Shown here piece after piece: positions 1-42,922 of a stretch of DNA of 64,000 nucleotides. The stretch lies in contig NW_005434528.1 of the NCBI RefSeq assembly GCF_000315625.1, forward strand, positions 98,230-162,229. Reading direction: 5' to 3'. Source of the DNA: Guillardia theta CCMP2712 (taxonomy: Eukaryota; Protista; Cryptophyta). The notes under the pieces are model-generated. The model was not told where the DNA came from and made no database searches. It saw only the letters and a program-made list of their open reading frames with translations. Within the stretch, counting starts at the first letter, position 1; the number at the start of each line of letters is the position of its first letter. The translations under genes were made by a program, and so were the position numbers.

Positions 1-299
1 GCTGATGACCTGGGACAAGACCGCACCTTCACGCAAGTGTGGAGCCAACCCCGACAACCGGGGCGATGGTCTCCATGCACCGCGGTCGCCATGGGGAAGG
101 ATGCAAGGGAGCCTCCTCAAAAGATCTCCGCTTAGTCAATGGCCTCGCCGCCGGCATCGGCTTTTCCCGCCATTGAGTTGGGGATGTGAATCGACAGAAG
201 AATACGCTGACGTGGGTCAATGCAGTCCAGTATGCCCTCGAGCTCTACCAAATTGCATAGCTCGCACTGGGTCATTGCGGCACTAGATCTCTTGGAACC

Positions 300-2600
300 T
301 TGAAGCGACAGCTCCAGGAGAGGTATCTACCGCCGAGCCTCTTGTCGCAGTTGGTTCTTCAACTCGATAATCTGCAACAGGAGCCTGCATGGTGTAAGAC
401 TCAATTCGACAAGCCGAGGATGGGGAGATATGACAATTTCATCAATTGCCACCACAGGCTCGAGCTCTCAAGGTGGCCGGAAGTACAAACATGGACGTGT
501 GCAGGTCCAAGGGAGAAGATCCTGGAAGGATGGAGGCAACAAGAATGGCGCCCATGATACAGGCTCCTTGTTGGGTTTTCCCTTGTCACGTGTCCTTTCC
601 CTGTTGCTTCCTAGCATCGAGAATAAACTCGATTGTGTTCACACCTGCTTCTTTATCTTTTGAGGTTTTAAGAGTATTCGTCTCTTGGCTGCTTAGACAT
701 AGACCTAGGGTGTAACGCGTCTTGGTAGTCGAAAGTTTTCATATTTACTTTGTGATGCAGCGTGGATTGATATCATGGTTTGAGGTAAACCATGCTTGCC
801 ATGCCTTGTGCTTGCATGTTGTCTGGATTCCATATTCAGGTTTGGATCGACGTTGGGTAACATAGACGCCAGCAGCAGTCAGACTGCTTTCTTGCACCTT
901 GCTGGGACTACCATGCACTTGTCAAAGTTTTTGAAAGACGATTTACGCAAAAAGCAGGCTAGTATTCATCGGCACAGCCTTCATGGTCAGGTGGAACTGA
1001 ATAGGTGATTCATCTCCTTGCTGGCCCTAGACAACGACCTTGACTCAAACGGCATCAGCTAGACATGGAGTACAGCTCCGACGGGTCTCCGATCAATGCT
1101 GACCTTTTGACATCACTGCTCGACTTGATGAACCACCCATCTGTCTCATTTCTCTAGACGATGCAATGGGCATACGGATCCAATTTGCTTGCTTCCAGCT
1201 CAAAAGATTCATTTCAGTATGCGTGACTTACCTTTGCTGTTTAAAATCAAAATTGAATTGGCACATTGGATTCGTCTCGAGATCCGCATATCGGTCTTGT
1301 ATGATCATAGATGTTATCATCGATTGCGTTTCGCACCATCATACCCATGTCGTAGAGATGTGCGTTGGAACTAACGATCTGTTGCAAGATCATTCACAAG
1401 TACTTCATCCTTGTCGGCCTAGAGCTACTGCAGCACCATTGGGCGTCTTTTGCTATCTGCTCAGACCGAGTCAGGTGAGTTGCCGCGCCTGACTCAGTAA
1501 CCCCTAAGCCCTCATCGGTCGGATTGAGATGGGCAGCTTGGTATCCTCCCACGAGCTAATGCTCAGCCGCTTCAATAACTCGAAAGAAGAAGCCAATGTC
1601 TGAGCCGAGAGGCAAATATTGCACAGTGTATGACAACGAGTCATGGATAGGACAGGTCAAGTACCAAATGCTCGCAAGTGGAGCCCATTCATTCAGCCAG
1701 TACTCTCCTGCTCGTTGAAGCAGCAGCCTGCAATCCAGTCTTGCACTTGCATGCAACATGTCCGAGCAAGTCGATGCGCCTCCTCACGCAAGCGCACTGA
1801 AGTCGTACGGCAGGGAACGTGCAGCTGACTCTTGACAGAGGAAGGGAAGGATGGTAGAGGCAGCAAGACCTTCAAGACATAAGTGTGCTTGAGAAAGCAG
1901 GAGGATGAGGGATTGCTAGGATTGGGCGAAGCTTGTTGGCTTTGGCGACGGAGTGCTAATTAGCACAATCGGTGCCAATTCATGGAAAAAACAAGAAGTA
2001 GGTTGTCACAGATCGCCACTTTCATCATGAAGAATTTCTCCTAGAGCTAGGAATGTTCATTGTGAGCCTTGTTTCGATGTGATCCACAGGGTAGGGATAA
2101 GACGAGGTGGGCTAACATTGATTCAACTGCGATGTACAGGATCTGAAACTCACTTGTTCTGAAGCGATAGGTGTGAGACAGCCTGTCAAAAGTTTGAAGT
2201 CAGCAGAGGAATCCTGATGGCCATGGGGTATGGGCCATAGGCAAAATGGTGCTTCGATGGGAGGCAGAAATCAGGACATCTTCAAAGTAGAGTACCTTAA
2301 TCATCGTGGCCCTTTGACATCTTGATCCTATCCTAGCATCACTGATCTTGCATTTGATAACAGGATGATTGATTGTCGTAGATCATAGGCATCGTCGATG
2401 ATTCGAGCTTTCTCTGACCCTAGCATCGTTGATCCCAGGACAAAGCATTGTTGATCGTAGCATTTGGTCACCTTAATCTCAGCATCTTTGATCCATGCAG
2501 CAGTCATAGGTTTCATCCTCCTCTGACAGCCTCTGCCCACCGAAGATGCTGCAGGCATCTTGCCATTCTTGCTGCACGTAATGCGCTCTCATGCTGACAG
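300..2600 (+). mobile_element. Highly degenerate Ty3/gypsy-like LTR retrotransposon relic
   Basis: Gag-like LKRQLQERYLPPSLLSQLVLQLDNLQQ near 300-380 and integrase zinc-finger-like GRDKT...DVQDLKLTC near 2090-2160. Many stops and frameshifts; no LTRs recognised; boundaries approximate. Confidence 0.4.
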
Positions 2601-3372: not shown

Positions 3373-6300
3373 ATGGGGATGGTGGGGGCTACGAGCATGC
3401 AGACGAGGGTTGCGGCGGTGTGGGGGAGGAAGACACTTGTATGGCATCTTCTTGTGATGTGCTCACTTGTACCTCTCACCTGCTCTGAGAGTGCTCCCTC
3501 GGAATCTTCTTTCATTTCAAGTACTCCAGCAATCTCCTCGTCCTCCTCCTCTACTCCAGCCTTCTCCTCCTCCTCCTCCTCTACTCCAATCATCTCCTCG
3601 TCCTCCTCTACTCCAGCCTTCTCCTCCTCCTCTACTCCGGTCGTCTCCTCCTCCTCCTCTACTCCGGTCGTCTCCTCCTCCTCCTCCTCTACTCCGGTCG
3701 TCTCATCGTCTACGACGTCGACTACTCCAGCCATCTCTTCGACTCCAGAAAGTACTCCGGTCGTCTCCTCCTCCTCGTCTACTCCGGTCGTCTCCTCCTC
3801 CTCGTCTACTCCGGTCGTCTCATCGTCTTCGTCTACTCCGGTCGTCTCATCGTCTACTACGTCGACTACTCCGGTCGTCTCATCGTCTACGACGTCGACT
3901 TCTCCGGTCGTCTCATCGTCTACTACGTCGACTACTCCAGCCATCTCTTCGACTCCAGAAAGTACTCCGGTGATCTCCTCCTCCTCCTCTACTCCGGTCG
4001 TCTCCTCCTCCTCCTCCTCTACTCCGGTCGTCTCATCGTCTACTACCTCGACTACTCCAGCCATCTCTTCGACTCCAGAAAGTACTCCGGTGATCTCCTC
4101 CTCCTCGTCGTCTACTCCGGTCGTCTCCTCCTCCTCCTCGTCTACTCCGGTCGTCTCATCGTCTGCGACGTCGACTACTCCGGTCGTCTCATCGTCTACT
4201 ACGTCGACTACTCCAGCCATCTCTTCGACTCCAGAAAGTACTCCGGTTGTCTCCTCCTCCTCGTCTACTCCGGTCGTCTCCTCCTCCTCCTCGTCTACTC
4301 CGGTCGTCTCATCGTCTACTACCTCGACTACTCCGGTCGTCTCATCGTCTGCGACGTCGAGTACTCCGGTCGTCTCATCGTCTACGACGTCGACTACTCC
4401 AGCCATCTCTTCGACTCCAGAAAGTACTCCGGTGATCTCCTCCTCCTCGTCTACTCCGGTCGTCTCCTCCTCCTCCTCGTCTACTCCGGTCGTCTCATCG
4501 TCTACGACGTCGACTACTCCGGTCGTCTCATCGTCTACGACGTCGACTACTCCGGTCGTCTCATCGTCTACGACGTCGACTACTCCAGCCATCTCTTCGA
4601 CTCCAGAAAGTACTCCGGTTGTCTCCTCCTCCTCCTCTACTCCGGTCGTCTCCTCCTCCTCCTCGTCTACTCCGGTCATCTCATCGTCTACGACGTCGAC
4701 TACTCCAGCCATCTCTTCGACTCCAGAAAGTACTCCGGTCGTCTCCTCCTCGTCGTCTACTCCGGTCGTCTCCTCCTCCTCCTCGTCTACTCCGGTCGTC
4801 TCATCGTCTACGACGTCGACTACTCCAGCCATCTCTTCGACTCCAGAAAGTACTCCGGTGATCTCCTCCTCCTCCTCCTCTACTCTAGCAATCTCCTCCT
4901 CCTCGTCTACTCCGGTCGTCTCCTCCTGGACTACTCCGAGCGTCTCATCGACTCCAGAAAGTACTCCGGTTGTCTCCTCCTCTTCCTCTACTCCGGTCGT
5001 CTCCTCCTCCTCGTCTACTCCGGTCGTCTCCTCCTCCTCCTCGTCTACTCCGGTCATCTCCTCCTGGACTACTCCGGTCATCTCATCGTCTACTACCTCT
5101 ACTCCGGTCGTCTCATCATCTGCGACGTCGACTGCTCCGGTCGTCTCATCGTCTACTACGTCGACTACTCCGGTCGTCTCATCGTCTACTACGTCGACGA
5201 CTCCGGTCGTCTCATCGTCTACGACGTCGACTGCTCCGGTCGTCTCATCGTCTACTACGTCGACTACTCCGGTCGTCTCATCGTCTACGACGTCGACTAC
5301 TCCGGTCGTCTCATCGTCTACTACGTCGACTACTCCGGTCGTCTCATCGTCTACTACGTCGACTACTCCGGTCGTCTCATCGTCTACTACGTCGACTTCT
5401 CCGGTCGTCTCATCGTCTACGACGTCGACTGCTCCGGTCGTCTCATCGTCTACGACGTCGACTACTCCGGTCGTCTCATCGTCTACTACGTCGACTACTC
5501 CGGTCGTCTCATCGTCTACTACGTCGACTGCTCCGGTCGTCTCATCGTCTACTACGTCGACTACTCCGGTCGTCTCATCGTCTACTACGTCAACTACTCC
5601 GGTCATCTCATCGTCTACGACGTCAACTACGTCGACTACTCCGGTCGTCTCATCGTCTACTACGTCAACTACTCTGGTCGTCTCATCGTCTACGACGTCG
5701 ACTTCTCCGGTCGTCTCATCGTCTACTACCTCGACTACTCCGGTCGTCTCATCGTCTGCTACGTCGAGTACTCCGGTCGTCTCATCGTCTACTACCTCGA
5801 CTGCTCCGGTCGTCTCATCGTCTACGACGTCGACTGCTCCAGTCGTCTCATCGTCTACTACGTCGACTACTCCGGTCGTCTCATCGTCTACTACGTCGAC
5901 TACTCCGGTCGTCTCATCGTCTGCTACGTCGACTACTCCGGTCGTCTCATCGTCTACTACGTCGACTACTCCAGTCGTTTCATCGTCTACGACGTCGACT
6001 ACTCCGGTCGTCTCATCGTCTACGACGTCAACTGCTCCAGTCGTCTCATCGTCTACGACGTCGACTACTCCGGTCGTCTCATCGTCTACGACGTCGACTA
6101 CTCCGGTCGTCTCATCGTCTACGACGTCGACTACTCCGGTCGTCTCATCGTCTACCTTCAGGACACCATCCTTGAGTTCTCCCGTGCCGACTTTTCAGTT
6201 GTGTGGCAACGGAGTTCTTGACCCTGGTGAGACTTGTGATGATGGAAACACAATCTCTGGCGATGGTTGCAGCTCGCTGTGTCGAGTTGAGCCATACTGG

Positions 6301-8340
6301 ACCTGCAGCAATCCGGTGGAGACCACGGAGGAGATCTTCTCGTCGCCTGTGACCAGCACACCTGTGCAAACAACGCCTGTACTGCAGATGACCGAGCATC
6401 TGTCTCTGTGTACATGGCTTGCTACTCCCCAGTGGACCGGACTCTCCGTGCTGAGCGGATCACAGTACGCAACGATGCTGAACCAGCTGACCATCTTGTT
6501 GACTTCCAACTTTCCTCTCAAGGTTGGAAGCAATTTCTCCATCATTGGTCTCAATGTCACTATCGACGGCAACCCCGACAATGTCTCAGTCTCAGGCAAT
6601 GACATATTGTCTTATGCTCTCTGGTCGGATACAGCGGGCAAGCTTACCGTGTTTGTCAAGGCTGAGGTCAACTCCACTTCCTTCACTGTGCAGGTCGTCA
6701 ACCCATCATACGGCAGAGATCCGATCACGCTTGGCGCTGTGTGCTCGGACTGTGTGAGCTTTGCTCCTTCCTATCTGGTCTACAATGCAAACCTCACAAG
6801 CGGCCTCGCCACGGTCGCCCTCGCACCCAGCTCTTGCGGGAAGGACGGCCAAGGGATCGCACTGTACGGCAGCGACTGTCAATACAAATGCTATGGTGTG
6901 GTCACAGATAAATATTGTGTCTGCAATGCGGGGCAGTTCGGGCCAGGCTGCTCTCAGAGTCTGGGAACTCCTTCTCAGGTGCAAACAAAGTCCATTCCGC
7001 CAGGTGAGGCAGCATCTATCTCAGGATCGGGCGGGCTCTCGGTGAGTCTTCCAGCTGGGGCTCTGCTGGGGTCTCAGACCATTAGCGTGGCGGTCTACGA
7101 CGTGTCAAATCTTAACCTATCTCAAGGAACTACGGAGACGCTTGTACCAGCTGGGCCCGTGATCATCTTTACTCCAGCTGGTCTGCGGTTCAAGAAGCCG
7201 ATAACCATCCGCATCCCGTACAATCCTGACAAGATACCAGCAAATCTTCGACCCTACGTGTTCTACTACAACTCATCGTCATTGAATCCGTGGGAGCGAC
7301 AGATTTCTACCCCAAGACCGAACGCGACTCCTCCGGTCTTGGAGGCTTTGATCGATCATTTTTCGGGGTTTACTCCTCTTGGTGCAAATCCTCCCTCGAA
7401 TAGCGATTCATCTTCTCCGGCTTCTTCGTCGACTGGTTTGACCACAAGCTCGACGATTGGCTTATCCACTCCATCCCCTCTCTCGCCCTCGCCCTCGCCC
7501 TCTCCTACTCCACTTTCTCCTATTCCATCTCCTTCACCTACTCCTTCTTCTCCTTCATCTCCTTCTCCTCCCTCTCCGAATGTTCCTCCACCACCGCCTT
7601 CTCCATCAGGAGGTGGCAGCGGTGGTGGTGGAGGCAGTGGAGGAGGAGGTGGAGGCGGCGGCGGTGGTGGAGGTGGAGGTGGAGCTCCAAGTCCGCCTTC
7701 AGCCCCAGCTGCTCCACCTACTTACACAGCCTCAAGCTCGGCCTCCGGCTTTGCGGTTCGATTGCAGGTCGTCTCGCCCATGTCAGACACCTTCTTCAGC
7801 TCCAACTCCGACCAGATCAAGCAAGCGCTGGCGGAGGGACTCAGACTCAACGTCGCCGATGTCAACAGCCCGACGGTCATCGGATACGTGCAACGACGGT
7901 CCAACCAATCTCTCTCTTTCTCGGCAGACTTGAAGGTGGACAACCCCTTGGGCTTTGTCGAGTCAGTACAAGCCAACGCATCTCAGACGTTGACGAGATT
8001 GAACGTGGCTTTCTCGCAGAGGAGCATCCCCGACGCTACATCTTTCAGCATATCATTGATACCGCCGCCTGCTCTGTCCTCGGGCGCGATCGCAGGGATC
8101 GCCATCGGGTCAGTGGGAGCAGGGCTGGTGCTGGTGGCTATCGGCTGGATGGTCTACAAGGAGAGGAAGAGAAGGAATGTGGAGAAGCGATACGCTATCT
8201 CTGAGCCGCCTGCACAACAAGCAGCTCCGCTTCCTGTTCAAGAGTCTCCAGTAAGTGCAGATGGCTTCAGCGTAAGCAGTCAGTTCGTTGTAGAACCGAC
8301 CTTTCAAAATCAAGGTTTTCACTACTACAGATGGAGCTGA
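3373..8340 (+). CDS. Mucin-like type I membrane protein, copy 1 (1655 aa)
   Basis: Uninterrupted ORF. Features in order: signal-like N-terminus, ~880-aa Ser/Thr/Pro array, CGNGVLDPGETCDDGNTISGDGCSSLC (Myxococcus cysteine-rich/DUF4215-type repeat), EGF-like Cys cluster, ZU5-like region ending in IDHFSGF, Pro/Gly linker, TM helix GAIAGIAIGSVGAGLVLVAIGWMVY followed by KERKRR. Confidence 0.9.
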   Translation: MGMVGATSMQTRVAAVWGRKTLVWHLLVMCSLVPLTCSESAPSESSFISSTPAISSSSSSTPAFSSSSSSTPIISSSSSTPAFSSSSTPVVSSSSSTPVVSSSSSSTPVVSSSTTSTTPAISSTPESTPVVSSSSSTPVVSSSSSTPVVSSSSSTPVVSSSTTSTTPVVSSSTTSTSPVVSSSTTSTTPAISSTPESTPVISSSSSTPVVSSSSSSTPVVSSSTTSTTPAISSTPESTPVISSSSSSTPVVSSSSSSTPVVSSSATSTTPVVSSSTTSTTPAISSTPESTPVVSSSSSTPVVSSSSSSTPVVSSSTTSTTPVVSSSATSSTPVVSSSTTSTTPAISSTPESTPVISSSSSTPVVSSSSSSTPVVSSSTTSTTPVVSSSTTSTTPVVSSSTTSTTPAISSTPESTPVVSSSSSTPVVSSSSSSTPVISSSTTSTTPAISSTPESTPVVSSSSSTPVVSSSSSSTPVVSSSTTSTTPAISSTPESTPVISSSSSSTLAISSSSSTPVVSSWTTPSVSSTPESTPVVSSSSSTPVVSSSSSTPVVSSSSSSTPVISSWTTPVISSSTTSTPVVSSSATSTAPVVSSSTTSTTPVVSSSTTSTTPVVSSSTTSTAPVVSSSTTSTTPVVSSSTTSTTPVVSSSTTSTTPVVSSSTTSTTPVVSSSTTSTSPVVSSSTTSTAPVVSSSTTSTTPVVSSSTTSTTPVVSSSTTSTAPVVSSSTTSTTPVVSSSTTSTTPVISSSTTSTTSTTPVVSSSTTSTTLVVSSSTTSTSPVVSSSTTSTTPVVSSSATSSTPVVSSSTTSTAPVVSSSTTSTAPVVSSSTTSTTPVVSSSTTSTTPVVSSSATSTTPVVSSSTTSTTPVVSSSTTSTTPVVSSSTTSTAPVVSSSTTSTTPVVSSSTTSTTPVVSSSTTSTTPVVSSSTFRTPSLSSPVPTFQLCGNGVLDPGETCDDGNTISGDGCSSLCRVEPYWTCSNPVETTEEIFSSPVTSTPVQTTPVLQMTEHLSLCTWLATPQWTGLSVLSGSQYATMLNQLTILLTSNFPLKVGSNFSIIGLNVTIDGNPDNVSVSGNDILSYALWSDTAGKLTVFVKAEVNSTSFTVQVVNPSYGRDPITLGAVCSDCVSFAPSYLVYNANLTSGLATVALAPSSCGKDGQGIALYGSDCQYKCYGVVTDKYCVCNAGQFGPGCSQSLGTPSQVQTKSIPPGEAASISGSGGLSVSLPAGALLGSQTISVAVYDVSNLNLSQGTTETLVPAGPVIIFTPAGLRFKKPITIRIPYNPDKIPANLRPYVFYYNSSSLNPWERQISTPRPNATPPVLEALIDHFSGFTPLGANPPSNSDSSSPASSSTGLTTSSTIGLSTPSPLSPSPSPSPTPLSPIPSPSPTPSSPSSPSPPSPNVPPPPPSPSGGGSGGGGGSGGGGGGGGGGGGGGGAPSPPSAPAAPPTYTASSSASGFAVRLQVVSPMSDTFFSSNSDQIKQALAEGLRLNVADVNSPTVIGYVQRRSNQSLSFSADLKVDNPLGFVESVQANASQTLTRLNVAFSQRSIPDATSFSISLIPPPALSSGAIAGIAIGSVGAGLVLVAIGWMVYKERKRRNVEKRYAISEPPAQQAAPLPVQESPVSADGFSVSSQFVVEPTFQNQGFHYYRWS
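3520..6160 (+). repeat. Coding minisatellite of mucin copy 1
   Basis: 33-bp unit ACTACTCCGGTCGTCTCATCGTCTAC(G/T)ACGTCG (TTPVVSSSTTS), about 30 copies from ~5100 to 6155. It is preceded by composite higher-order units containing STTPAISSTPE. Confidence 0.95.
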
Positions 8341-8471
8341 GGCCCTGACATGTCTTGAATTTTGAAAAACACAACAAAATCTAATAATCTTCTGTAACTA
8401 CAATGATGAACTGTGATTTGAAAGCAAATAGATTTAACATGAAACTCGACACACACATTCGCTTTTGTTCA

Positions 8472-9659
8472 TCAGACGATTACGTGTCCAAAACCAGGTG
8501 GGCGTGCAACAAGAAGATTATCCTCGTAAAACTTCAGCCCTTGTACGATCATGTCCAGAGAAACAGATGAAGCTCCATGTATCTGCTGTAGACTTCCACT
8601 GGCCGGTCCCATCGGCGGTCGGTTTGACCCTGACACTGCATGGAGATAAAGGCGGATCCTTGCAGCTTGTGGCTTGTCCTGGAGGAGGATACCAAGCTCT
8701 TGATCGGAGTTGATCAGGATCTTGTCGCCATCGTCATCTATGTAGCTTAGCTGCAAGCAGCTCGTTGGGAGGCCCTTGAGATCTTCACTAAAAGCGCTTT
8801 GAAGTCCTTCCATCACCATCCTGTAACCACCTACAGGATTGCCAAGATGATCGAAGTCAAAGCTCCAATTGAGATGTCTGAAGACAGCTTCTTTCTCTCT
8901 TTGTACAAGAGATACCTTGAAGTTCATCTCACGATGTCTCAAGGAGCTGGAAGTCTGCGCCCCTGACTTTGGCATGAACGAGTGTTCAGATGATAACCGC
9001 GTAGGAAAAGTTTCGTTCGATTCGACGTGCGCGTTGCGACTCGTTCTGCGAGGCCTTGAGAGGCCATGACGCTTGATAAACCGAGAGTACCAGCCATGAG
9101 ACGCTTTGAAGTCTGACACCCCCATCTCGCTTGCCACGTTCATCGCACACTTGCAAATCTGTGACCTGCATCCCAACCCAAGACCGGCCTCTACTATGCA
9201 TTCATGGATTCGCTTCTCCAGTTCTAGATGTGAATCGTTGGGAGCATAGCGCTTGATGCTCGCATGAAGACCACAACCAGATATGTATTTCAGTCTGCAA
9301 ACATTCTCGGCCTTGAGAATTTTAGATATTGCGGATCTGCTCTTCCCAAACATCGTTGCGAGCTGGCCCTGGGTCATGAAGACTTCAGGGTTTGTTGAAG
9401 TATAGCACTTGATGATTTCCATCTTCTCTCCAAGAGTCAGGTTGCTCTTCTTGTTGTCAGCTTTCTTACATGAACCGCGGTCTGCCTTTGTCGTCTCCTT
9501 TGCTAGACTTGGCATGTTTCGAGCCCCTGACTCTGCAGATTCTTGTTGAAGAGGGGTTTGCTGAGCCATTGGAGGTGAGAAGAGACAAGGTTGCAGGTTC
9601 CCAAGGCCGCACAACTTGGCGAGAGTGTCGAAGTTCTTCACAGGCAGAAGTGTTTGCAT
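8472..9659 (-). CDS. CENP-B/pogo-type tandem HTH + PB1 domain protein, copy A (395 aa)
   Basis: LTLGEKMEIIK...TQGQLATMFGKSRSAISKILK (psq/CENP-B N-terminal HTH), LELEKRI...FKASHGWYSRFIKRHGL (HTH_Tnp_Tc5), and FKVSL...LSYIDDDGDKILINSDQEL (PB1 with OPCA motif). No DDE domain. Confidence 0.85.
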   Translation of the reverse strand: MQTLLPVKNFDTLAKLCGLGNLQPCLFSPPMAQQTPLQQESAESGARNMPSLAKETTKADRGSCKKADNKKSNLTLGEKMEIIKCYTSTNPEVFMTQGQLATMFGKSRSAISKILKAENVCRLKYISGCGLHASIKRYAPNDSHLELEKRIHECIVEAGLGLGCRSQICKCAMNVASEMGVSDFKASHGWYSRFIKRHGLSRPRRTSRNAHVESNETFPTRLSSEHSFMPKSGAQTSSSLRHREMNFKVSLVQREKEAVFRHLNWSFDFDHLGNPVGGYRMVMEGLQSAFSEDLKGLPTSCLQLSYIDDDGDKILINSDQELGILLQDKPQAARIRLYLHAVSGSNRPPMGPASGSLQQIHGASSVSLDMIVQGLKFYEDNLLVARPPGFGHVIV

Positions 9660-19118: not shown

Positions 19119-20273
19119 ATGCGGGCTCTTTTATCCAAGGAGAATCGCGATAATTCATCAAAGTCAAGTGGACCTTCAAATCTTCGACCTTGTCTCTTCT
19201 CCAATCAGATTGTTCAGAAAATTCCTCCCCAACAAGAAGCTACAGAGTCCGGTGCAAGAAGCACAACGTCAAGGTTAAGCGATAATGCGATGGCAGAATG
19301 CGCTGACATGAAGCGCAACCTGACTCTTGGAGAGAAGATGGAAATCATCAAGTGCTATACTTCAACAAACCCTGAAGTTACTATGACCCATAGCCAGCTC
19401 GCAAAGATGTTTGGGATGAGCAGATCTGCTATTTCTAAAATTCTCAAGGCCGAGAACGTTTGCAGATTGAGACACATTACGAATTGTGGTCTTCATGCGA
19501 GCATCAAGCGCTATGCTCCCAACGATTCACATCTAGAACTGGAGAAGCGAATCCATGAATGCATCGTAGGGGCTGGGCTTGGATTTGGCGGCAGGTTGGA
19601 GATTCGCCAATACGCTATGGAAGTAGCAAGAGAGATGGGGTTGTCAGACTTCAAAGCGTCTCATGGCTGGTGCTCTCGGTTTATCAAGCGTCATGGTCTT
19701 ACAAAGACGAAAATCTTGGGTCGAGACGTGTATGTGGAAACAAACAAAACTTCGCTTACGACTGTATCATCTGCATCATCGCTGACGCAGAAGTCAGAGG
19801 CGCAGACTTCCAGCTCCTTGAGACATCGTGAGATGAACTTCAAGGTATCTCTTGTAAGGGGAGGGCAAGAAGATGTCTTCAGACAGCTGAAGTGGAGCTT
19901 TGACTTCGATCATCTTGACAATCCTGTAGGTGGTTACAGGATGGTGATGGAAGGACTTCAAAGTGCTTTCAGTGAAGATCTCAAGGGCATTCGAACGAGC
20001 TGCTTGCAGCTAAGCTACATAGATGACGATGGCGACAAGATCCTGATCAACTCCGATCAAGAGCTTGGTATCCTCCTCCAGGACAAGCCACAAGCTGCAA
20101 GGATCCGCCTTTATCTCCATGCAGTGTCAGGGTCAAACCGACCGCCGATGGGACCGGCCAGTGGAAGTCTACAGCAGATTAATGGAATTCAACCTCTTCC
20201 TCTGGACATGCTTGTACAGGCCTTGAAGTCTTACGAGAACAATCTTCTTATTTCAACCCTACCTGTTGTATGA
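19119..20273 (+). CDS. CENP-B/pogo-type tandem HTH + PB1 domain protein, copy B (384 aa)
   Basis: Same motifs as copy A. Start placed at ATG 19119 because both copies share the context TTCATCAGCCATGC. Confidence 0.85.
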   Translation: MRALLSKENRDNSSKSSGPSNLRPCLFSNQIVQKIPPQQEATESGARSTTSRLSDNAMAECADMKRNLTLGEKMEIIKCYTSTNPEVTMTHSQLAKMFGMSRSAISKILKAENVCRLRHITNCGLHASIKRYAPNDSHLELEKRIHECIVGAGLGFGGRLEIRQYAMEVAREMGLSDFKASHGWCSRFIKRHGLTKTKILGRDVYVETNKTSLTTVSSASSLTQKSEAQTSSSLRHREMNFKVSLVRGGQEDVFRQLKWSFDFDHLDNPVGGYRMVMEGLQSAFSEDLKGIRTSCLQLSYIDDDGDKILINSDQELGILLQDKPQAARIRLYLHAVSGSNRPPMGPASGSLQQINGIQPLPLDMLVQALKSYENNLLISTLPVV

Positions 20274-24942: not shown

Positions 24943-27900
24943 TCACGACATGCCGTAAGCCATGGGCTGCTGGCCGTACGTTGCAACATTAACCGGCATG
25001 GGAGCAGCGGCTGAGTAGGGCTGAGGCAGGTAGACAGGCCCCATCTCCTCTTGTACCTTCTTGCCTGCGAGCTTCGGCGCGAGGAGCTTGTAGGCGAGCA
25101 GGCCGAGCAGAGCTGCTCCTACCACGCCCCCGATGACGCCTCCGATGATGGCTCCGATGTTCTGACCTCCTGCTGGAGTCGTCGACGAGCTCGCGCTCGC
25201 TGGTGTGGACGCTGCTGACGAGGCCCCAACGAGCACGGCAAGCTTGCGCGGGTCTGTCTTCCATGCAAACATCCTGCTGCTGGCAGATAGCAGAGCAGTC
25301 TTCTGACCGTTGGAGTAGGAGCCCGCAATGGTGTCGTTGAGGTACATGTCGGCTGTAGTAGCTGACGACGTCGACACGATGAGCAGGGCCGGGCTGCTCC
25401 AGGTAGAGTCCAGCACGGACGGTCGGCTGGTGATGGAGTAGGAGTACGCGCCGCCATCTGACACCGACAGGCTCTGCTGGGGTACAGCCTGATCGCCCAA
25501 TATCTGACCGAAGGAGTCCAGCACGAACACGGGCGAGCCTGGCTCGTGAGGGATCGGAGAGCTGGCGTTGATGGCGTTGGAGCCGTTGGTAGGAGACAGC
25601 AGTGAGCTGTCTGAGCTCGGGTCATACCCGTCCATCCTGTCCTGGAAGTAGAGAGGGTCTGCTGGGAACCTCCAAGGCTGGTACGTCACGGGGTAGTTGA
25701 GGTTGGCTCTGATCAACCTCTGTGTGAACTTGTCCGTCAGGTCGACCCCGAGGTAAGTCTGCTGGACCAGAGGGCGGTAGGAGTAAGTCGCTCCTCCGAC
25801 CGCCTCTCCTTGCGCATTGTTGTCAATGAACCTGTTGAGACTCAGCTGGAAGGATGGCCGACTTGTCACCCCGGCTCCTCCCGACAGCACGTGGACGCCA
25901 GACACTGCGATCACTCCAGCCGCGTTCATGCTGTACACAGGCAGAGCTGTGAAGCCCGACGAGCCCAGCAGACTTGACCTGACGTTGAGCTGCCAGGAGA
26001 AGAAGGCGTTGGGGATGTTGTAGGGCGTGTTGGTCACGTGAGCAGCCGCCGACGTTCCTCTCAGTCTGCGATCATCCGCGGGGACGGTGCCTGAGGCGGG
26101 CTGCCGGATCATGATGATCTCCTCGTCGAGCTGTGCCCAGACGTCTTGGTAGCTGCTAGGGGCCTGCAGGATCGAACTGGGAAGGGCGATGGAGCCCAGC
26201 TGGGAGATGTACCTCAGTTGGTCGCTGCGTCGGGTCATAAGAGTCACAGAAGACGTTTGCGATGATGTCGTTGGGGTAGGAGAAGTCCATGTGACTGATG
26301 CTGCGAGCTTGTGAGGGGCAGGATCAGTGCCTGCTTGAGCTCGAGAGACTTGGAGGAGGTTGCCGTTGATGTTGTCTATCCTCATAATCTCGTTGTCGAT
26401 TACGAAGCTGTCGCCGGCTCGGAACCCGGAGGCGTCGAAGAGGATGATGCGCGTAACCGTCGAGTCAATGTCTAGAGCAAGCTTTGACCTGGCGTAGCTC
26501 TTCTTGGAGACTGGTAGCAGCTGAAAGGTGTCGTACACGTCATACAAGTAAGAATCACCTTCACCTAAGTTTGGGCTATATCCTCCTGACGTGAACTTGA
26601 GGCGGACTTCGTTCTCAGAGGATGAGATGACTTGTGCCGTCCCGCCTTCTTGATTGCCGTTATACCACGAGAACAAGACGCTGTCACCGGGAGATAGTGC
26701 GGTACCGTTGATGACGTCAAACCTCTCGTACTTGTACAGGGCTGATGTGTCTTTTTTGAATTGAAATTGAATCCAAGAAGAAGTGAATAGAGTCACATCA
26801 AGATAGTAATTTCCGACGACCTGCACTTGAAACACTCCATATGTCTTAGTTTCCACATCAATGATATACACGAAGTCTCCAGGGGAATAGAAGTCCGAGA
26901 CTTGAGTGGACAAGTATATGGTATAGGTAGCCCATAGATCAGTCATTTCATAAGTCGAGTTGAGGCGCCTCAGACCTTCAGTTTTCACAAGGTAATCTTT
27001 ATAACCTGAACCGCAAGATGGACTTTGATGATCAGGTACATCAGGTATTACAAGTTCTACGGTGATGATACCTGCATTGATTCCTGTAATTTTGAAAATT
27101 GTGCCCCAACCATTCACGATGTCTCCAACTACAAAGTCTGAAGTCCTTGTCATGGTCAGCTCTAAACCACTAGCACCAGTGCAATACGGAGGGTTGAGGT
27201 AAGCTGGCTGAGCAATGGTCTGCACAAGCGCTCCAGCTGAGACGCTGCGTGCCTGTGGATTCCCAAGCCACTTAGGGATCAATTCTCGACGCACACTGCC
27301 GTCAGACTGATACTCCATCACATCTATGTACTCCATTCCGGCTTGGCTATCATAGTTGATGGCCCACAAGAGATCTCCAGCTTGAAGTCCGTAAGTGTTG
27401 GAGAAGTTCGCGTTCGTTGCGGTCGAACTGATATCGTGCTCGAGGACGCGAGGGTTGAATAGAAGATTCACAGATACTCCTGTATAAAATGTGGATTGAC
27501 CCTTGTTCGACTGGAATTGAGCTCTTTCAACCGTCAGGTTCTGATAGAGATGCTGCGATACGTTAGCCGTCTCAGTGCTCAACACCAACATCGCCTCAAA
27601 ATTGGAAAGATAGTAATCATATATCAGCAGATAGTCGCCTGGTTGAAAGCCTGACGACTGTGTATCCTTCACTGGGTCCATGACACGTAGAACAGTGTCT
27701 TGAGATGTGAGATCTTCCAACAATATCATATTCGATCTGTAGATGGAAGGGATTTCACTCGAGTCAAAAGGGGTGGTGCTTGCTGATCTCATTGTTAGCT
27801 TCACCAGCACTCCCGTCGGGTACGATGACGCAGATGTTCCTACCTGCGCTCGCTTGACGGTAAGTGTATTGCCGGATATCGAAGTGACTGTCATGGTCTC

Positions 27901-30900
27901 GCCCAGCACCTGGATGAAGGCCCCCAGGTAGAGGAGGCTCGCGTCTGACACAGAGAAGGTGGTTTGACTGGCTGTCACGGCTTCCAATAGAACAATGGGA
28001 TACTGTTGCAAAAGAAGGACGTAGCCCACCGCCTTGTACGCCACGTGACTACTTGCGATCGTCCCTCCTTGTGCTCGTAGGACAGTCAGCGACGAGGCTC
28101 CTACGGCAGTGACGTACATGACCTCCTTCTCTACCTGGATGTATCTGCCCGACGTGAACTTGCCGGCGTTCGACACGTCAATGCTGGTCGCGTCCCTTGC
28201 GACGCTCTTGAGCAGCACGGAGCCCGGGTTGAAGGTCCTGACAACGGTGCCTGCGGCGAAGGTCGAGGCTATGCTGGAGTTCAGCGCGCCTCGAGTGACC
28301 GTGAGAGTGCTCTGCTGGACGCTGATCGCGTCCACGAGCAGGACTTCATCTACGAGTCGGATATAGTCGCCCACCTTGAAGCCCGACACTGATTGCACCT
28401 CCAGCACAGCCGACCTGGAGCTCTGCAGGAGCCGACGAGCCGCCTGGTCTCTGAGAGCCACAAGAGTCGTGACAGGGAAGTTGCTGAACGAGCCGTAGAC
28501 TGCGTTGATGAAGCCGGGTCTGAACAGATAGTCCACTCCGGTAACCTGGCCCGCCAGGTTGCGGACAGAGCTCTGATCGAAGGACAAGTCGCCCGGCCAG
28601 TAGAGAGGGCCCGGCTGAAGGGCGTCTGAGCTGGGGCTGTCGGTGAAATAGAGTAGAATCTCCGCGCACGGATACGCTTGTCCGGCATCCGAAGGAAACT
28701 CGAGCCTCAGCGGGTTAGGCGTGCTGGGAGAGAAGCCGAAGCCCGCGTTGAGCAGGACTGGCTGCTGGGTCCGAGCATCCCACCCGATGGCTGCCAGCGC
28801 CTCATCAGCGACCACGCTCGACAGCGAGGCATCAAGCACTGTCGACAGGTAGGAGGGACAGTTGTCGGCCGCGCAGGTGCGGGCGGAGCAAGGGAACGTA
28901 GCACATGCGCTGCACTGCGAGGAGCCTGAGCAGGAAGGCAGCGGGTTGAGCTCTGCTTGCGAGTAGGCGCTGGTGCAGAGTTTGGAGCCCGGGCAGAGAG
29001 ACTTGACAACAAACGACCCGCTGCTGCAAGTCGGCTGGACGTTTGCGGCCCCCTGGTTGAGCTCTGGCAGCGAGACGTTCCTCACGAGCTCGACCCGAGA
29101 CGCGACCATCCCACTTCTCGGGTAAGCGCCGAGAGTGGGAGCTGGGCATGCCGGCAGCGACCCAGACGAGGAAACGAGCTTGATGCTCGGAGCGGTCAAG
29201 TAGCCGGATCCTGCGTTGATGACTTTGAGCACGTACTGGTAGGGAGCAGCGTCGGCAGCGAAGCCCTTGCTGGCTGCTGTCGAGCTCGCAGACGGGCCGT
29301 TGGTGTAGGGGTCCGCGCTGGTGTCGATGTAGTCGAGCAAGACCTCTGCCTGCACTCCGCCTGAGGGGGGAGGCTCCACGAGGACGCGCGGGGGCTGACA
29401 GAGCGAGGCGGACGCGAACGTCTCGTTGCCTGTGATCTTGAAGATCAAGGAGCCTCGCGGGCCTTGGAAGCCCTGGCTGCGTCTTGCCGTGTAGACGTTG
29501 CTGGAGGAGTACGCCGACGGCCCGCTCGACACGCGCATCTGCAGCGTCTTGCGCGTCCTGTAGTCTCCTGCTGCTCCGTCCGCCGGCGAGCAGACTTGCA
29601 GCCCGTCGCGGTTGCTGGGCGAGAAGAAGGCGCTGCTCGCTACCGACTGCTCGCACGAGCCCGAGCACTCTCCGCTCACCGTTGCCTCCACCTGAAGCTC
29701 TGAGGCAGTGCACACCTGGTTGGCGATGGAGTTGGCGTTCTTGTCAGCACAGGCGCTGCTGGAGCATCCGCTGCAGCTGAAGGTCGCGATGGGTCTGGAG
29801 CCCGAGCTCTGGTATCCGTATCCCTCGTGGGTGATGAGAGCTCCGTCGAGAGTCAGGCCTGTCTGCTGTGCCACAGTGCCTGAGGCTATGACGAAGCCCG
29901 AGTAGACGTTGGTGCCCTGGTACGCCGTGTTGAGCGAGAAGAAGGAAGGCTTGCAGAGCGTCTGCTGGCTGCTGCTGAGGTCCGCAAAGTCTTGTCGGTA
30001 GCTCTTGACCGCCCCTCTGACGCTAAACTCCATGTCGACAACGATGGGGATGTTGGCGTACCCTTGACCCTGCTGTACGATCTCGTAGCTCGGAAGGCTC
30101 GCGCCCGCAGCTTGGGAGACTTTGATCTTGAGCACCTGCCCTCCTGGCCGCTGCGGAGAGCTGAACACCAGCACCGACCCATCGCAGCTGAAGAGATTAG
30201 TCACGGTCGTAGGCCCGTTGTAGTGCACTACCCCATCCTCACCGCTTACAAGCCTCGACCCCGAGACAGGAAAGGACCAGGTGGGGACCGCCACGGCGTT
30301 GGCATGAGCGTCGACCAGACCTTTGGCGTTGATAGCTGACGGGCTTATCTTCACGCTTGTGAACCCGAACGCAAACCCCGACACCCCCTGCTGGGGGACC
30401 GTCACTGCTGTGACTCGAGAGCTGTTCCACGAGCCGCCTGCCCTCAGCATCGTCTGCGTGACTGCAGTGCTGCAAGCCTTGTTGAAGCCGACCACCACCG
30501 GCGAGTCCATGGTAGAGTGGAAGGCGGGAGCCTTCGACGATGACGTCAGCAGCGCCGACTGCATGCCAGTGTACGAAGAGGCTCTCGAGCCGGCCATGTG
30601 AACGTCTGAGGTCGCGAAGCCTAGGATCGCCCGGGCGCTGCCGTCTGTGCACGGCAGGGTCACAGCTGGCGGATACTCGTACCCGGACCCTCCGTCGATG
30701 ACCTCGATCGAGGTGACGCCGCCGTTGGCAGCTGTTTGAGCCCTCGCGGTCCTGCCCGAGGGCGGAGGCTCGATGGTGATGGGTCCTGTGCAAGACGACG
30801 ACGGTAGAGACGTCACGACTATCGCAGCCACGTATCCTGTTCCGACCTCAGCGTTGGACTTCCTCGCATCATATCGCTTGTAGAGAGCGACCGCGGGGAA

Positions 30901-33900
30901 GACGGTCGAGTGCAGGCCAGTAAGGGAGTCGAAGTGATCTCGCTGGGGGTGGTACATCATCAGGTTGGAGTCTGCTGTCACCCGCAGACGAGAGGTGAAG
31001 TTGTGAGACAAGTGCGCTATGGCAAAGGCGTCACAAGGCGTGTTTGAGTTGAGGTTCGTAAGCGTCACGGTAGGCGGGAAGAAGTACCCTCTGCCCGCGC
31101 TGGTGAGGGAGATGCTGGTGATGGACCCTCTGCTGACAGTCGCGATTGCCATAGCCTGAGAGCATAGAGAGCTGTCGGACGAACAGACCGGGGTGTTGGT
31201 CAGCCCATCAGTCACCCCGTCCTTGTCGGGACTGGAGATGGTGACCTGGACGTTGGCGCTGCAGCTTGTTCCTGGAGTCACGATCTCGATCCGCTCGATG
31301 CCTGACCTCTGCCCCTCGAGCATGAACACGCCCGACAAGCTCCTGCCAGAGGTGCAGGTGCCGTAGAACCTCCCGGGTCGGAGATAGCCCGTACCCCAAG
31401 TAGAAGGAGGAGCAAACACAGGCACGCTCCCTCCGACGCTTGTCATGGTCTCAGCATGGTTGACCGTCACCCCGTCGGACGCCTGGGGTCTCTCGATGTC
31501 GCTTCCCTGGATGGTGCAGGTGTCGCCTGACGACATGGCACCGCCGAGCACAAGCATCCGCGAAGCAGCAGAGCCCGCTAGCCTGACGTTGCGAAAGCTG
31601 ACGGGCGTCGCGAACTGAAACCTCGTCCTCTCTCGGATGGTCTTGGAGGCGTCATCTGTAGAGGGAGTGACGAACGCGTTGGGGTTGCTGGGGACCGACT
31701 TGAACCGGTAGCCGGGGATGCTGATGCTGACGCTCTCGCCCTGTCGGATCCACTTGCCCTTCGCCACCTGCAGCTGCAGCTGCGTGTAGATGGTGTAGGG
31801 CTTGTTGGCCAGGTCGATGCTTCTAGGCTTGTTGCCCTTGAGGTCTGCCACCCAGTAGACGCCGCCTGCTCCCTGCTTGATGACGTACTCGCTGGACCCG
31901 ATCATCGCTGTCATGCCGGTGTACCGACCGACCTGCTCCTTGGGCACGACCTGACAGTCGCTCAAGAAGGAAGTCGGAAACTCTTCCGCCACCACAAAGC
32001 ATTGTCTAGCTGGGTTGTAGTCGAGGATAGACTGGGTGACAACGGTGCTCGTCACGTTGGTCAAGGAGACGTCAAACACTGGAAGCTCAAGCTGCTGGAC
32101 TGTCGAGGGCAGGCCGACACTTGGCTTGAGCGAGGTGGTGATGGTGGGGATGGACGTGTATCCGCTGCCTTGAGACGTGAGGCTGGCACTCGCCACAGAG
32201 ACAAGCACTCGCAGCTGGGTGTTCTTCCCGGACACGGTCGCATACGGATATCCGGAGTACAGCCCGGGGGCAGTGACATGCACAGCTGGGCTGGTGCTGT
32301 AGAGAGAAGAGATGGTAGCATTCGCCGGCAGGACTTGGTAGGTAGCATCGAAGACGATCGTGTCACCAGCTGCCAACAAGCTGCCTGACACGTACTGGAC
32401 TCCCACCACCTGGTACAGCAGCGTCCCTGTTGCCTGATCGGTCGCGCCAGATGCCACAAACGTCGGCGCGGCTCCTGATACTCCCGAGCTCTCCGAGTAT
32501 CTCCCGCTGATGACCACAAGGCCCCCGTGCCGCACTCGCACGCTTGTGACCTGACCGCCGGCTGTCACCGTGTGCTGATTGTTGCGGCACTTGAGCTGCA
32601 TGCCGACATAGTCCGACGGTTGAAGGAGGTTGACGCTGGTGTTCCTGTAGCAGATGTCCTGCGTGTACCCTAACGACGACGAGGCTCCGTTGGTCACCTT
32701 GGTCAGCACCAGCGTCTTCGATGGACCCCCGAAGGTGATGTCGCTGTCCGGAAGGCCCCACGGGCAGGACACGCGGCTCCAGCACAAGTCCTTGTTCTTG
32801 TTGTAGCCATCGTCATCCCGCGACAGCACAAACAAGCCGTCCACGTCTCCGTCTCCTGACCGATGCCTGTTCCCGTCCGCCACCCAGCCGTTGCTGATGT
32901 ATGCTCGAGCGCGATCTTCCTGGTAGTAGTTGAGCTCCCACTCCAGCTGCGTGGTGAAGGTGGTGAAGGCCGGGTTGGGCGACGACGTCACGCCGAAGAT
33001 GGGACCCGTGACAACGTCGTAGGCAGGCAGGTTGACGAGGAGCGTGTCGCCTTCGTAGAGGTTATGCTCGGGAGTGACCGTGAACACGACATCTCTGCTG
33101 GGCTGCTCCTGGAGCTGCATGCTGGACTTTGCTCGGACCTCGTAACCACTGTCTAGCGTCGCAGACACAAATGATAAACCCGACGTGACCGTCAGAGCTT
33201 GAGCGCTGGCGGCAGTGCCCTGGTTGACCAGCTGCAGCTGGACTGTGTAGATAGAGTGATCGTAGACGATCGCTTCTGCTTGCGCGCCGCTCCCGGAGCC
33301 CGAGGGGTCGACGATCAAGACTCGAGGACGCATCGTGTAGCCTGAGCCAGGCGCTGTCAGGCTGATGGACGTGACGGCACCGGAGATCACGGTCGCGGCT
33401 GCTGAGGCAGAGCTGCCGGCAGCAAACACTACCCCAGCAGCTGTGCATGTCGGCTTCGTCCAGAACTCAGCTCCAGGCGTAACGTCGCATATGATCACAC
33501 TAGCATACTGATACCCCGACCCTCCCGCTGTGACCTCCACCTTGTACAGGCCCTTGGATCGGCGAGCATTGACGTTGTAGAACGGGTCGTAGACGGAAGA
33601 TGAGTACTGCGTTGACGCCCCGGTGTACGAGATCTGTATCGTGTTGTCGAGGTACTTGCATACGCTGTTGAACACAGCCGCAGGCGCTATCCCGTTGGCG
33701 CGATGCTTGTTGGTAGCGGCATTGACAACCTGGCCGTTCCTAGCTATCGTACATGGGATGTCCGATGATCCAGCGTTCTTCATGCTGACAAACGATCCGA
33801 CTGTGATAGTCTGACCCGAGGTGAGAGGATAGTTAGGCTGTAGCTCCATCGTCAACCAGACTGTGCTGCCTGTCACATTCGATCCCGACCTGATGTTGGA

Positions 33901-38294: not shown

Positions 38295-39412
38295 GCTCTG
38301 TTCAGCGATATCAAAAAACAGAGGGGGGTAATAAATGACCACAGTAGATGTGCGCGGGACCCAAACAAAGTAATTGTTGGAGGCAACGAATATGTGGCTG
38401 ATGGAATTGTAACGAATGCACCTTTGTAGAGATCTGTTCACCCGGTGGCGGCGCTACACAAGATGAACTTCAAGAAACGTCTTTCAGATGTGAAGTACCA
38501 TACATTTCAGATATTAAATAGCTTACGAGTTGAAGCATCAAAGAATTATGAACCTTTTCCCTGGTTCAACCAGATATAAGAGTGATATAGACACATGCAG
38601 CGAATGTGATCTTTAGCTTCATCTGAATATTAATTCAGCTTAGAGGGAAGATGCTGTTAATGACATTGACGCAACACGACTCTCGCCTCTTCTCTTCATG
38701 AGATCGTTCAACTGAATCACCATTGAATCCCCAGATCGGAGATCAGGTCAGGCTTTCAACAGCTGGATCATTCAAGAGTGCAGAATTGTGTCCGAGTGCG
38801 ATCTACATTTTCAGATTGATCTCAACAACTGGAGTACTGCGACTACGACATCAAGTCACTTCGACCTCAAATGGATCGAGACTCCTCCTACGACATCGTC
38901 GTCGCCCTAGAAGCATAGCACACTCATCACCAGGGACTCGAGCAGGGAGCTGAGAAAATCCTTGCCAAGCGCACCCATTTACGTGGTCCCCTACATGTGC
39001 GGGCACGGTGTGCGGTATGAGCCTTTGGTAATATACAGGGGCTCAAGTGTTTAGAGGACAATCTTTTTGTTGCAAACCCACCTGTATTTGTACACGTAAT
39101 CTACAAATGAACGAAAGCTAAGGTGTGAGTATTCTAGAGATTGGTATAAAGGAACACTAGGAACTCAAATCACTATACCATGAAATCTTGTCTCAAATCA
39201 CTATACCATCAATCACTGTACCATGAAATCTTGTCTCAATCCTTCTAGATCCCATGAAGTCTTGCAAGGTACGCAATTTGTAGTTTGGGGAAACTATTCG
39301 AGTTTGATGTCAGGATGCAAGTTTCTTTATTTGCCTTCATAGAAACCTAAAGAATACATTAAAATGTCTCTTCACCATTGTTGTCCTTCAAAATTCAAGA
39401 CACGTCAGGGCC

Positions 39413-42400: not shown

Positions 42401-42922
42401 AGTAGATGAGGAGGAGGAAAGGACAGGGGTAGAGGAGGAGGAGATGATCGGAGTAGATGAGGAGGAGGAGAAGACTGGAGTAGAGGAGGAGGAGATGATC
42501 GGAGTAGATGAGGAGGAGGAAAGGACAGGGGTAGAGGAGGAGGAGATGATCGGAGTAGATGAGGAGGAGGAGAAGACTGGAGTAGAGGAGGAGATGATCG
42601 GAGTAGATGAGGAGGAGGAAAGGACAGGGGTAGAGGAGGAGGAGATGATCGGAGTAGATGAGGAGGAGGAGGAGATGATCGGAGTAGATGATGAGGAGGA
42701 GGAGGAGAAGGCTGGAGTAGAGGAGGAAGACAATGCTGGAGTAGGGGAGGAGGAGGAGGAGATGATCGGAGTACTTGAAACGAACGTAGATTCCCAGGGA
42801 GCACTCTCAGAGCAGGTGAGAGGTACAAGTGAACACATCACAAGAAGATGCCATACAAGTGTCTTCCTCCCCCACATCGCCGCAACCCTCGTCTGCATGC
42901 TCGTAGCCCCCACCATCCCCAT
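39413..42922 (-). CDS. Mucin-like type I membrane protein, copy 2 (1169 aa from the homologous ATG)
   Basis: Near-identical to copy 1 outside the repeat array. Start set at 42922 by homology (GGATCAGCGCATGGGGATG in both copies). Confidence 0.9.
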   Translation of the reverse strand: MGMVGATSMQTRVAAMWGRKTLVWHLLVMCSLVPLTCSESAPWESTFVSSTPIISSSSSPTPALSSSSTPAFSSSSSSSTPIISSSSSSTPIISSSSTPVLSSSSSTPIISSSTPVFSSSSSTPIISSSSTPVLSSSSSTPIISSSSTPVFSSSSSTPIISSSSTPVLSSSSSTPIISSSTPVLSSSSSTPIISSSTPVFSSSSSTPIISSSTPVLSSSSSTPIISSSSTLVLSSSSSTPIISSSTPVLSSSSSTPVISSSSSSTPVISPFPSGTPVISPFPSGTPVNSSFTGSTPVISSSSSSTPVLSSSSPTPVLSSSTTTPIISSAPSTTPVISSSTSSATSTTPVVSSTFSSSPVISSSAFSTPSLSTPVPTLQLCGNGVLDPGETCDDGNTISGDGCSSLCRVEPYWTCSNPVETTKEIFSSPLTSTPAETTPAPFQTTVISFSSSTSEIAFSSSTPIISSSSSTPVMSSSSSPPIISSSSSSPVVSSPSATEAISAPETTPDMSSPSTTPAQVSEHLSLCTWLATPQWTGLSVLSGTQYATMLNQLTIFLTSNFPLKVGSNFSIIGLNVTIDGNPDNVSVSGNDILSYALWSDTAGKLTVFVKTEVNSTSFTVQVVNPSYGRDPITLGAVCSDCVSFAPSYLVYNANLTSGLATVALAPSSCGKDGQGIALYGSDCQYKCYGVVTDKYCVCNAGQFGPGCSQSLGTPSQVQTKSIAPGEAATISGSGGLSVSFPAGALLGSQTISVAVYDASSLNLSQGTTETLVPAGPVIIFTPAGLRFKKPITISIPYNPDKIPANLRPYVFYYNSSSLNPWERQISTPRPNATPPVLEALIDHFSGFTPLGANPPSNSDSSSPASSSTGLTTSSTIGLSTPSPLSPSPSPSPTPLSPIPAPSPTPPSSPSSPSPPSPNVPPPPPSPSGGGSGGGGGSGGGGGGGGGGGGGGGAPSPPSAPAAPPTYTASSSASGFAVRLQVVSPMSDTFFSSNFDQIKQALAEGLRLNVADVNSPTVIGYVQRRSNQSLSFSADLKVDNPSGFVESVQANASQTLTRLNVAFSQRSIPNATSFSISLIPPPALSSGAIAGIAIGSVGAGLVLVAIGWMVYKERNRRNEENRYVTLEPPAQQAAPLLVQGSPVSADGFTVRSQFVVEPTFQNQGLGYHRWS
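41830..42775 (-). repeat. Coding minisatellite of mucin copy 2
   Basis: Alternating STPIISSS / STPV(L/F)SSSS units, different from the copy 1 unit. Confidence 0.9.

Follow-up and report, generated by a model that had tools for sequence, protein, structure and literature searches.

What kind of protein carries the DNA-binding head of a transposase and, in the place of a DDE domain, a domain of the sort that lets molecules associate with each other? The question is raised by an intact, intronless coding sequence at 8472..9659 on the minus strand of the window, the whole 64,000-nucleotide stretch analysed here, taken from the nuclear assembly of Guillardia theta CCMP2712 (scaffold C146:98230-162229). 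The gene, referred to below as copy 1 (C146:106704-107888), encodes 395 amino acids plus a stop codon in the order HTH-HTH-PB1. A sequence-only reading of this locus had taken the product to be a domesticated transposase DNA-binding module that converged on a polymerising factor of the NLP/ARF kind. We consider it likely that the gene is a host gene of a cryptophyte family encoding a sequence-specific DNA-binding protein, in which a pogo/Tc5-type double HTH is followed by a disordered linker and by a type-AB PB1 domain in the DDE position.

The domains of copy 1 are recognised by Pfam to different degrees. HTH_Tnp_Tc5 scores 30.5 bits (cut-off 22.2) at aa 166-202, and PB1 (PF00564) scores 28.4 bits (cut-off 23.6) at aa 282-340, with only profile positions 27-82 of 84 matched. 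CENP-B_N, at aa 69-118, reaches 20.5 bits, which is 0.7 bits below its cut-off of 21.2, and an NCBIfam scan of the protein returned only a sub-threshold ParB HTH match. Taken together with the profile match and the structural model described below, these scores uphold the earlier assignment of a psq-like HTH, a Tc5/CENP-B HTH and a PB1 domain, and the two motifs quoted with it, FKVSL (aa 247-251) and YIDDDGDKILINSDQEL (aa 306-322), are both found in the intact 395-aa frame. The CENP-B/pogo-type double HTH occupies 9051..9446 (aa 72-203), with the first HTH at about aa 76-114 and the second at about aa 142-197. It is followed by the disordered linker at 8937..9050 (aa 204-241; pLDDT <50), a fast-evolving segment with omega of 0.7-1.0, and by the PB1 domain of type AB at 8634..8936 (aa 242-342). 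Within PB1, the codon of K248, the basic-face lysine of beta-1, is at 8916..8918, and the OPCA acidic motif is at 8694..8744 (aa 306-322); all of these features lie on the minus strand.

The DNA-binding half matches a known structure over its whole length. A family profile built from six close homologues and compared with the PDB matches the entire CENP-B DNA-binding domain, 1HLV, such that aa 75-202 correspond to residues 4-129 of the chain (E 1.3e-8). In the AF2 model, which was built on the family alignment, the HTH module has a pLDDT of 80-93 and consists of two three-helix units with a helix between them. VIA-align superposes this model on 1HLV with Z 8.5 over 125 of 131 residues at an rmsd of 5.7 Å, a value that is expected if the HTH units take a different angle without DNA. 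The first HTH is thus supported by the 1HLV profile match and by VIA-align, independently of the sub-threshold CENP-B_N score. The Tc5 score, the 1HLV match and the homology to a resident pogo ORF described below all agree with the view that the pair is of pogo/CENP-B type. When membership in CENP-B proper was tested, only the N-terminal 129-residue DNA-binding domain was matched, and no DDE-derived central, acidic or helical dimerisation region was found.

The C-terminal half had been read as a PB1 domain, and to the Pfam score the model adds structural evidence for this identity. Residues 241-341 are modelled with a pLDDT of 85-94 as a ubiquitin-like beta-grasp of topology b-b-a-b-b-a-b, the elements being b1 242-252, b2 259-269, a1 278-289, b3 302-307, b4 313-316, a2 319-326 and b5 334-341. 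The best Foldseek matches of the model are p62 PB1 (E 7.6e-5), AtNBR1 PB1 and other PB1 domains. VIA-align superposes it on p62 PB1 over 82 of 82 residues with Z 11.6 and an rmsd of 2.0 Å; the Z scores are 10.7 for NBR1 PB1 and 9.9 for AtNBR1, and the PB1 domains of NBR1, PKC-iota, Cdc24 and MEK5 are all within Z 9-11. Judged by the Z scores of p62, NBR1 and AtNBR1, the modelled domain best resembles the filament-forming type-AB PB1 domains.

PB1 domains of type AB carry a basic and an acidic face, and both can be located in the family. A PB1-only profile compared with PDB sequences aligned the OPCA segment alone (E ~0.1), so the beta-1 lysine is not placeable from sequence alone and the register of the structural alignment was used. 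In this register, which is inferred from the range ends (model 244..342 = p62 3..102), K248 in beta-1 corresponds to residue 7 of p62; Lys7 of p62 is the lysine whose mutation, combined with that of D69, reportedly abolishes the polymerisation of p62. The OPCA segment, aa 306-322, sits on beta3-beta4-alpha2 of the model (strands at 302-307 and 313-316, helix at 319-326), and in the HMM alignment it pairs with p62 YRDEDGD..SSDEEL, nearly identical residue by residue. Across an alignment of 28 members the basic face shows K in beta-1 in 24/28 and R or K in beta-2 in 27/28, usually as an RR pair, and the OPCA positions are conserved in a similar range (Y306 in 27/28, D308 in 23/28, D312 as D or E in 27/28, D319 in 22/28 and E321 in 25/28). 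The basic lysine and the acidic OPCA motif are thus both present, as had been claimed by reference to type I/II PB1 domains, and the norm of the family is a two-faced, type-AB PB1 with both faces kept in most of the 28 members. Type-AB features do not guarantee polymerisation, and it is self-association that we infer from them.

That PB1 takes the place of DDE can be seen by comparison with transposase-type ORFs resident in the same genome. Pfam detects no DDE domain in copy 1, and the protein stops 50 aa past PB1. In the 87-Mb G. theta genome the same Pfam search found only two DDE_1 loci, both of them intact, single-copy pogo-type ORFs with a Tc5 HTH and DDE_1: an ORF of 563 aa on C16 (L011 1003-2694, minus strand) and one of 588 aa on C3 (L012 859-2625, plus strand), with DDE_1 scores of 88.8 and 79.2 bits, respectively. 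By hhalign, aa 72-203 of the family align with aa 13-144 of the C16 ORF (95.5%, E 1.6e-8, 26% identity). Past the HTH pair the homology ends, with DDE_1 beginning at aa 211 in the C16 ORF and, in the family, the linker and then PB1 from aa 242. Over these 130 residues the resident ORFs and the family have a homologous double HTH, but what follows it is DDE_1 there and PB1 here. The claim that PB1 lies where DDE would sit is therefore confirmed against the resident C16 ORF, by an alignment that covers aa 72-203 only. Around the two DDE_1 loci, an inverted-repeat search for clear TIRs gave only short, badly matched and differently placed pairs. Where the first catalytic Asp is usually found, inspection by eye shows the motif MDETG in one of the DDE_1 ORFs and IAETG in the other. 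At least one of the two, as its sequence is read here, may be a domesticated, inactive transposase itself.

The family joins two known kinds of protein, the transposase-derived DNA-binding protein and the DNA binder coupled to PB1. CENP-B, Jerky, TIGD and S. pombe Abp1/Cbh1/Cbh2 have the same N-terminal double HTH of CENP-B_N plus HTH_Tnp_Tc5 as the G. theta family, and in both groups a host gene unites a transposase DNA-binding head with a C-terminal self-association module. The CENP-B-type proteins, however, keep a DDE_1-derived and usually inactive central domain, whereas the G. theta family is wholly without DDE_1; and CENP-B dimerises by a helical domain of its own, whereas the association module of the G. 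theta family is a PB1 beta-grasp. The plant ARF (B3+PB1) and NLP (RWP-RK+PB1) proteins share with the family the design of a DNA-binding domain plus a C-terminal type-AB PB1. Their DNA-binding domains are unrelated to the HTH pair, as Pfam finds no B3, RWP-RK or GAF in copy 1, and the PB1 of G. theta is structurally nearer to p62/NBR1 than to ARF/IAA. ARF and NLP are proteins of plants and the HTH-PB1 family is one of cryptophytes. The likeness is a convergence of architecture and not a case of membership. The best structural matches of the PB1 domain are those of p62/SQSTM1 and NBR1, with an OPCA motif nearly identical to that of p62, a counterpart of Lys7 and an Arg in beta-2. In contrast, the cytoplasmic autophagy receptors p62 and NBR1 have ZZ and UBA domains and an N-terminal PB1, and the PB1 of G. 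theta is C-terminal to a DNA-binding module. The idea of a domesticated module that converged on an NLP/ARF-like factor thus stands as regards the domain identities, the behaviour as a host gene and the two PB1 faces, but the likeness to NLP and ARF is one of design by analogy and not a homology of DNA-binding domains.

The proposed mechanism is as follows. Like that of CENP-B, the HTH pair would bind DNA at a specific box, and the PB1 domains would pair front to back, the K248/R261 face of one molecule docking on the OPCA face (D308-E321) of its neighbour. Such pairing could occur between identical molecules and also between paralogues, and it would cause DNA to be bound as dimers or chains, possibly of mixed paralogues. 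Binding of this kind could in turn lead to cooperative occupancy of repeated sites or to the bridging of distant sites. The logic of this design would be that of plant ARF and NLP, and also of CENP-B, which dimerises by a C-terminal domain of its own. In this scheme the direction from transposase to host gene is presumed, the two PB1 faces suggest actual self-polymerisation, and the protein may act as a transcription factor. By analogy with CENP-B and fission-yeast Abp1, a role in chromatin or at the centromere is equally conceivable.

An alternative that deserves to be taken seriously, but that we regard as less likely than not, is that PB1 serves, in place of homopolymerisation, regulated hetero-pairing with other PB1 proteins, in which partners would switch the activity of the DNA-bound protein as Aux/IAA does with ARF. 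The partners could be paralogues with a single face or the product of an ORF on C9 (L013 2426-4342, minus strand; 639 aa), which has a C-terminal PB1 of the same subtype (hhalign 98%, 32% identity) and no HTH, an example of this PB1 being carried on another body. A tandem pair on C103 also points this way. Its ORFs (L014 2596-3534 and 1014-2036, both minus strand) are 313 and 341 aa long; one member has Leu for the beta-1 Lys with an intact OPCA, and the other is without the second HTH and has a Ser/Asp-rich stretch instead. From these features the C103 pair and the C9 protein are possible hetero-oligomer partners. Most family members, however, keep both faces, which is what self-association needs, and the models of hetero-pairing and homopolymerisation are not exclusive. 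A further ORF, on C43 (283 aa), has PB1 at 23.4 bits, just below the Pfam cut-off of 23.6, and its HTH signal is limited to a weak match with HTH_38.

It is also possible, but unlikely, that the protein is not a gene-specific transcription factor but acts on chromatin, at centromeres or in genome defence. It would then bind repeats such as satellites or transposon ends and cluster them through PB1. CENP-B acts at alpha-satellite and fission-yeast Abp1/Cbh1/Cbh2 at retrotransposons, so that host proteins with such an HTH pair do have roles of this kind, and CENP-B is built in this way, as a DNA-binding domain joined to a multimeriser. About 60 further loci with the HTH module in G. theta are in keeping with such a factor as well. 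On the other side, no result of the analysis connects the protein with centromeres or repeats, and transcription factors derived from transposases are equally well documented (PMC10027918). The roughly 60 further loci encode the CENP-B-type HTH module alone, and many of them are in tandem, with arrays at C23:592-602 kb (period of ~1.8 kb), C2:1041-1047 kb, C82:213-217 kb, C312:8-16 kb and C30:397-408 kb. They are a large lineage-specific expansion of short predicted HTH proteins.

To return to the preferred reading of a polymerising DNA-binding host protein, it can be extended, tentatively, to the evolution of the family. Cryptophytes may have evolved a regulator with DNA-binding and polymerising-PB1 halves independently, by grafting a p62/NBR1-like type-AB PB1 on a captured pogo head, and the family may then have diversified into proteins with both faces (AB), proteins with one face (the K-less one of C103) and PB1 partners without HTH (the C9 protein) that form a lineage-specific oligomerisation network on DNA, like that of ARF with Aux/IAA; we see this as a speculation worth stating more than as an expectation. 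The finding of the HTH-PB1 architecture adds PB1 as a domain partner to the routes by which the DNA-binding heads of transposases enter service as host proteins. It also provides, outside land plants, a second and independent instance in which a DNA binder is joined to a domain of the head-to-tail oligomerising kind, so that polymerisation as a recurrent solution for cooperative DNA binding becomes testable in a distant lineage. Cryptophyte nuclear gene regulation is almost unstudied, and the analysis flags in this lineage both a specific regulator family and an expansion of about 60 genes with CENP-B-type HTH modules.

Whether the gene belongs to the host or to a mobile element can be judged from its copies, its flanks and the selection acting on it. 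The sequence-only reading had counted two intact copies, which is correct: besides copy 1 at 8472..9659 (minus strand) there is copy 2 at 19119..20273 (plus strand), with 384 aa from Met plus a stop codon, 71% amino acid identity to copy 1 and the same architecture. The deposited model for copy 2 is shorter and carries precomputed PF03221, PF04218 and PF00564. In addition, a truncated remnant of a third copy, comprising only the last ~23 codons, lies at 39033..39101 (plus strand), and a search around this 39-kb remnant found no further gene sequence. A copy with 97% identity is located outside the window, 26.5 kb upstream (C146:80154-81338), and a 57% paralogue is on scaffold C2; the copy number in the genome is not high, with four close full-length paralogues, three on C146 and one on C2. 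No TIRs flank copy 1 or copy 2. The inverted-repeat search around them returned pairs that were short, poorly matched and inconsistently placed, and these were rejected as transposon ends.

At the DNA level copies 1 and 2 resemble each other only in the coding sequence, with a similarity of 83%. The comparison of dN/dS among homologues, proposed earlier as a check, separates the domains from the rest of the protein. Between copy 1 and the old C2 paralogue, omega (Nei-Gojobori) is 0.09 in the HTH module and 0.19 in PB1 but reaches 0.72 in the linker and 0.53 in the tail, values that are conservative because dS is saturated. The HTH and PB1 domains are, by these ratios of 0.09-0.19, under purifying selection and the linkers are not, and the N-terminus, linker and tail that are disordered in the AF2 model are the fast-evolving parts. 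The lack of TIRs, the similarity confined to the CDS, the constraint and the homologues in at least four further genera of cryptophytes are the behaviour of a host gene and not of a mobile element, as far as the sequence can tell. A rival view, in which the ORF would still belong to a transposable element (as an accessory or non-autonomous derivative of pogo) and its copies would be products of transposition, suits the transposase-type HTH pair, the several copies on one scaffold and the intronless gene. It is largely refuted and highly improbable in view of these same four observations, the genome-wide count of two DDE_1 loci and the spread of the 97% copy by segmental duplication.

In this duplication the 97% copy was carried along with the 3' part of the adjoining mucin-like gene, the shared segment being at least 2.9 kb long with 97.7% identity, and its divergence from copy 1 is equal in the CDS (0.84%) and in the flank (0.93%). 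The adjoining gene in the window is a mucin-like, Ser/Thr-rich ORF of 1655 aa at 3373-8340 (plus strand), which is tail-to-tail with copy 1. A second mucin-like ORF, at 39413-43021 (minus strand), is tail-to-tail with the third-copy remnant, and its 3' end (39387-39753) is 92% identical to 8000-8367. Elsewhere in the window, a single ORF of 4127 aa spans 12.4 kb at 24943-37326 (minus strand) and is GC-rich, with GC up to 0.63.

Between the 97% copy and copy 1 there are 10 nonsynonymous and 0 synonymous substitutions. Positive selection on the 97% copy was considered and set aside, as divergence is equal in CDS and flank and the chance of 0/10 synonymous changes is roughly 0.08. The 10:0 pattern, though unusual, is here taken as recent neutral divergence and is probably due to chance after a very recent duplication. 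With omega of 0.47 between copies 1 and 2, and the 10:0 pattern of the 97% copy, the youngest duplicates may be under relaxed constraint.

Divergence between copies 1 and 2 is very uneven. Over codons 307-336 (8652-8741), which cover the OPCA core, there are 0 differences in 90 nt; beside the core there are 5 differences in 90 nt, and at the N-terminus 35-38 in 90 nt. Over the same pair dS ranges from 0.09 in PB1 up to 1.47 at the N-terminus. This pattern suggests a putative gene-conversion tract between the two inverted paralogues.

Relatives of the protein were found by two kinds of search. A word-based search returned 17 homologues; an exhaustive profile search returned 1766 proteins at E <= 1e-3, and in about 17 clusters at 50% identity the match extends over HTH as well as PB1. 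Pfam detects PB1 in 9 of 18 homologues and in most of 10 further ones, and in ten HTH+PB1 homologues the Tc5 HTH and PB1 are detected together in 6. The named members that bear PB1 are all cryptophytes, namely Guillardia theta, Hanusia phi, Rhodomonas salina, Baffinella frigidus and Teleaulax amphioxeia. Judged on such named homologues alone, most homologues being environmental sequences, the family is apparently confined to cryptophytes. The homologues in other cryptophyte genera are mostly transcriptome records, and several relatives are therefore transcribed.

As for earlier descriptions, the G. theta proteins are named in databases only 'hypothetical protein' or 'HTH CENPB-type domain-containing protein'. 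A eukaryote-wide PB1 survey screened all MMETSP transcriptomes, Cryptophyta included, and the PB1 proteins it reports from Chromista are of the Kinase, NBR1 and CBS families, apart from single cases with TPR or EF-hand; an HTH-PB1 family is not among them (PMC7051960). Full-text literature searches found nothing on the combination of HTH and PB1. In the ESM Atlas there was no large cluster with HTH-PB1 architecture and a feature search gave no usable match; all structure rows had TM <0.35, the nearest neighbours being PB1 proteins and the nearest cluster NLP. Within the PB1 survey and the literature searched, the HTH-PB1 architecture is not described, and in these sources it does not coincide with an already characterised family. 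The profile search also matched very long animal proteins in which Tc5-type HTH stretches are repeated 5-10 times, among them a 2283-aa 'HTH CENPB-type domain-containing protein' of Magallana gigas; these proteins may be arrays or fused gene models.
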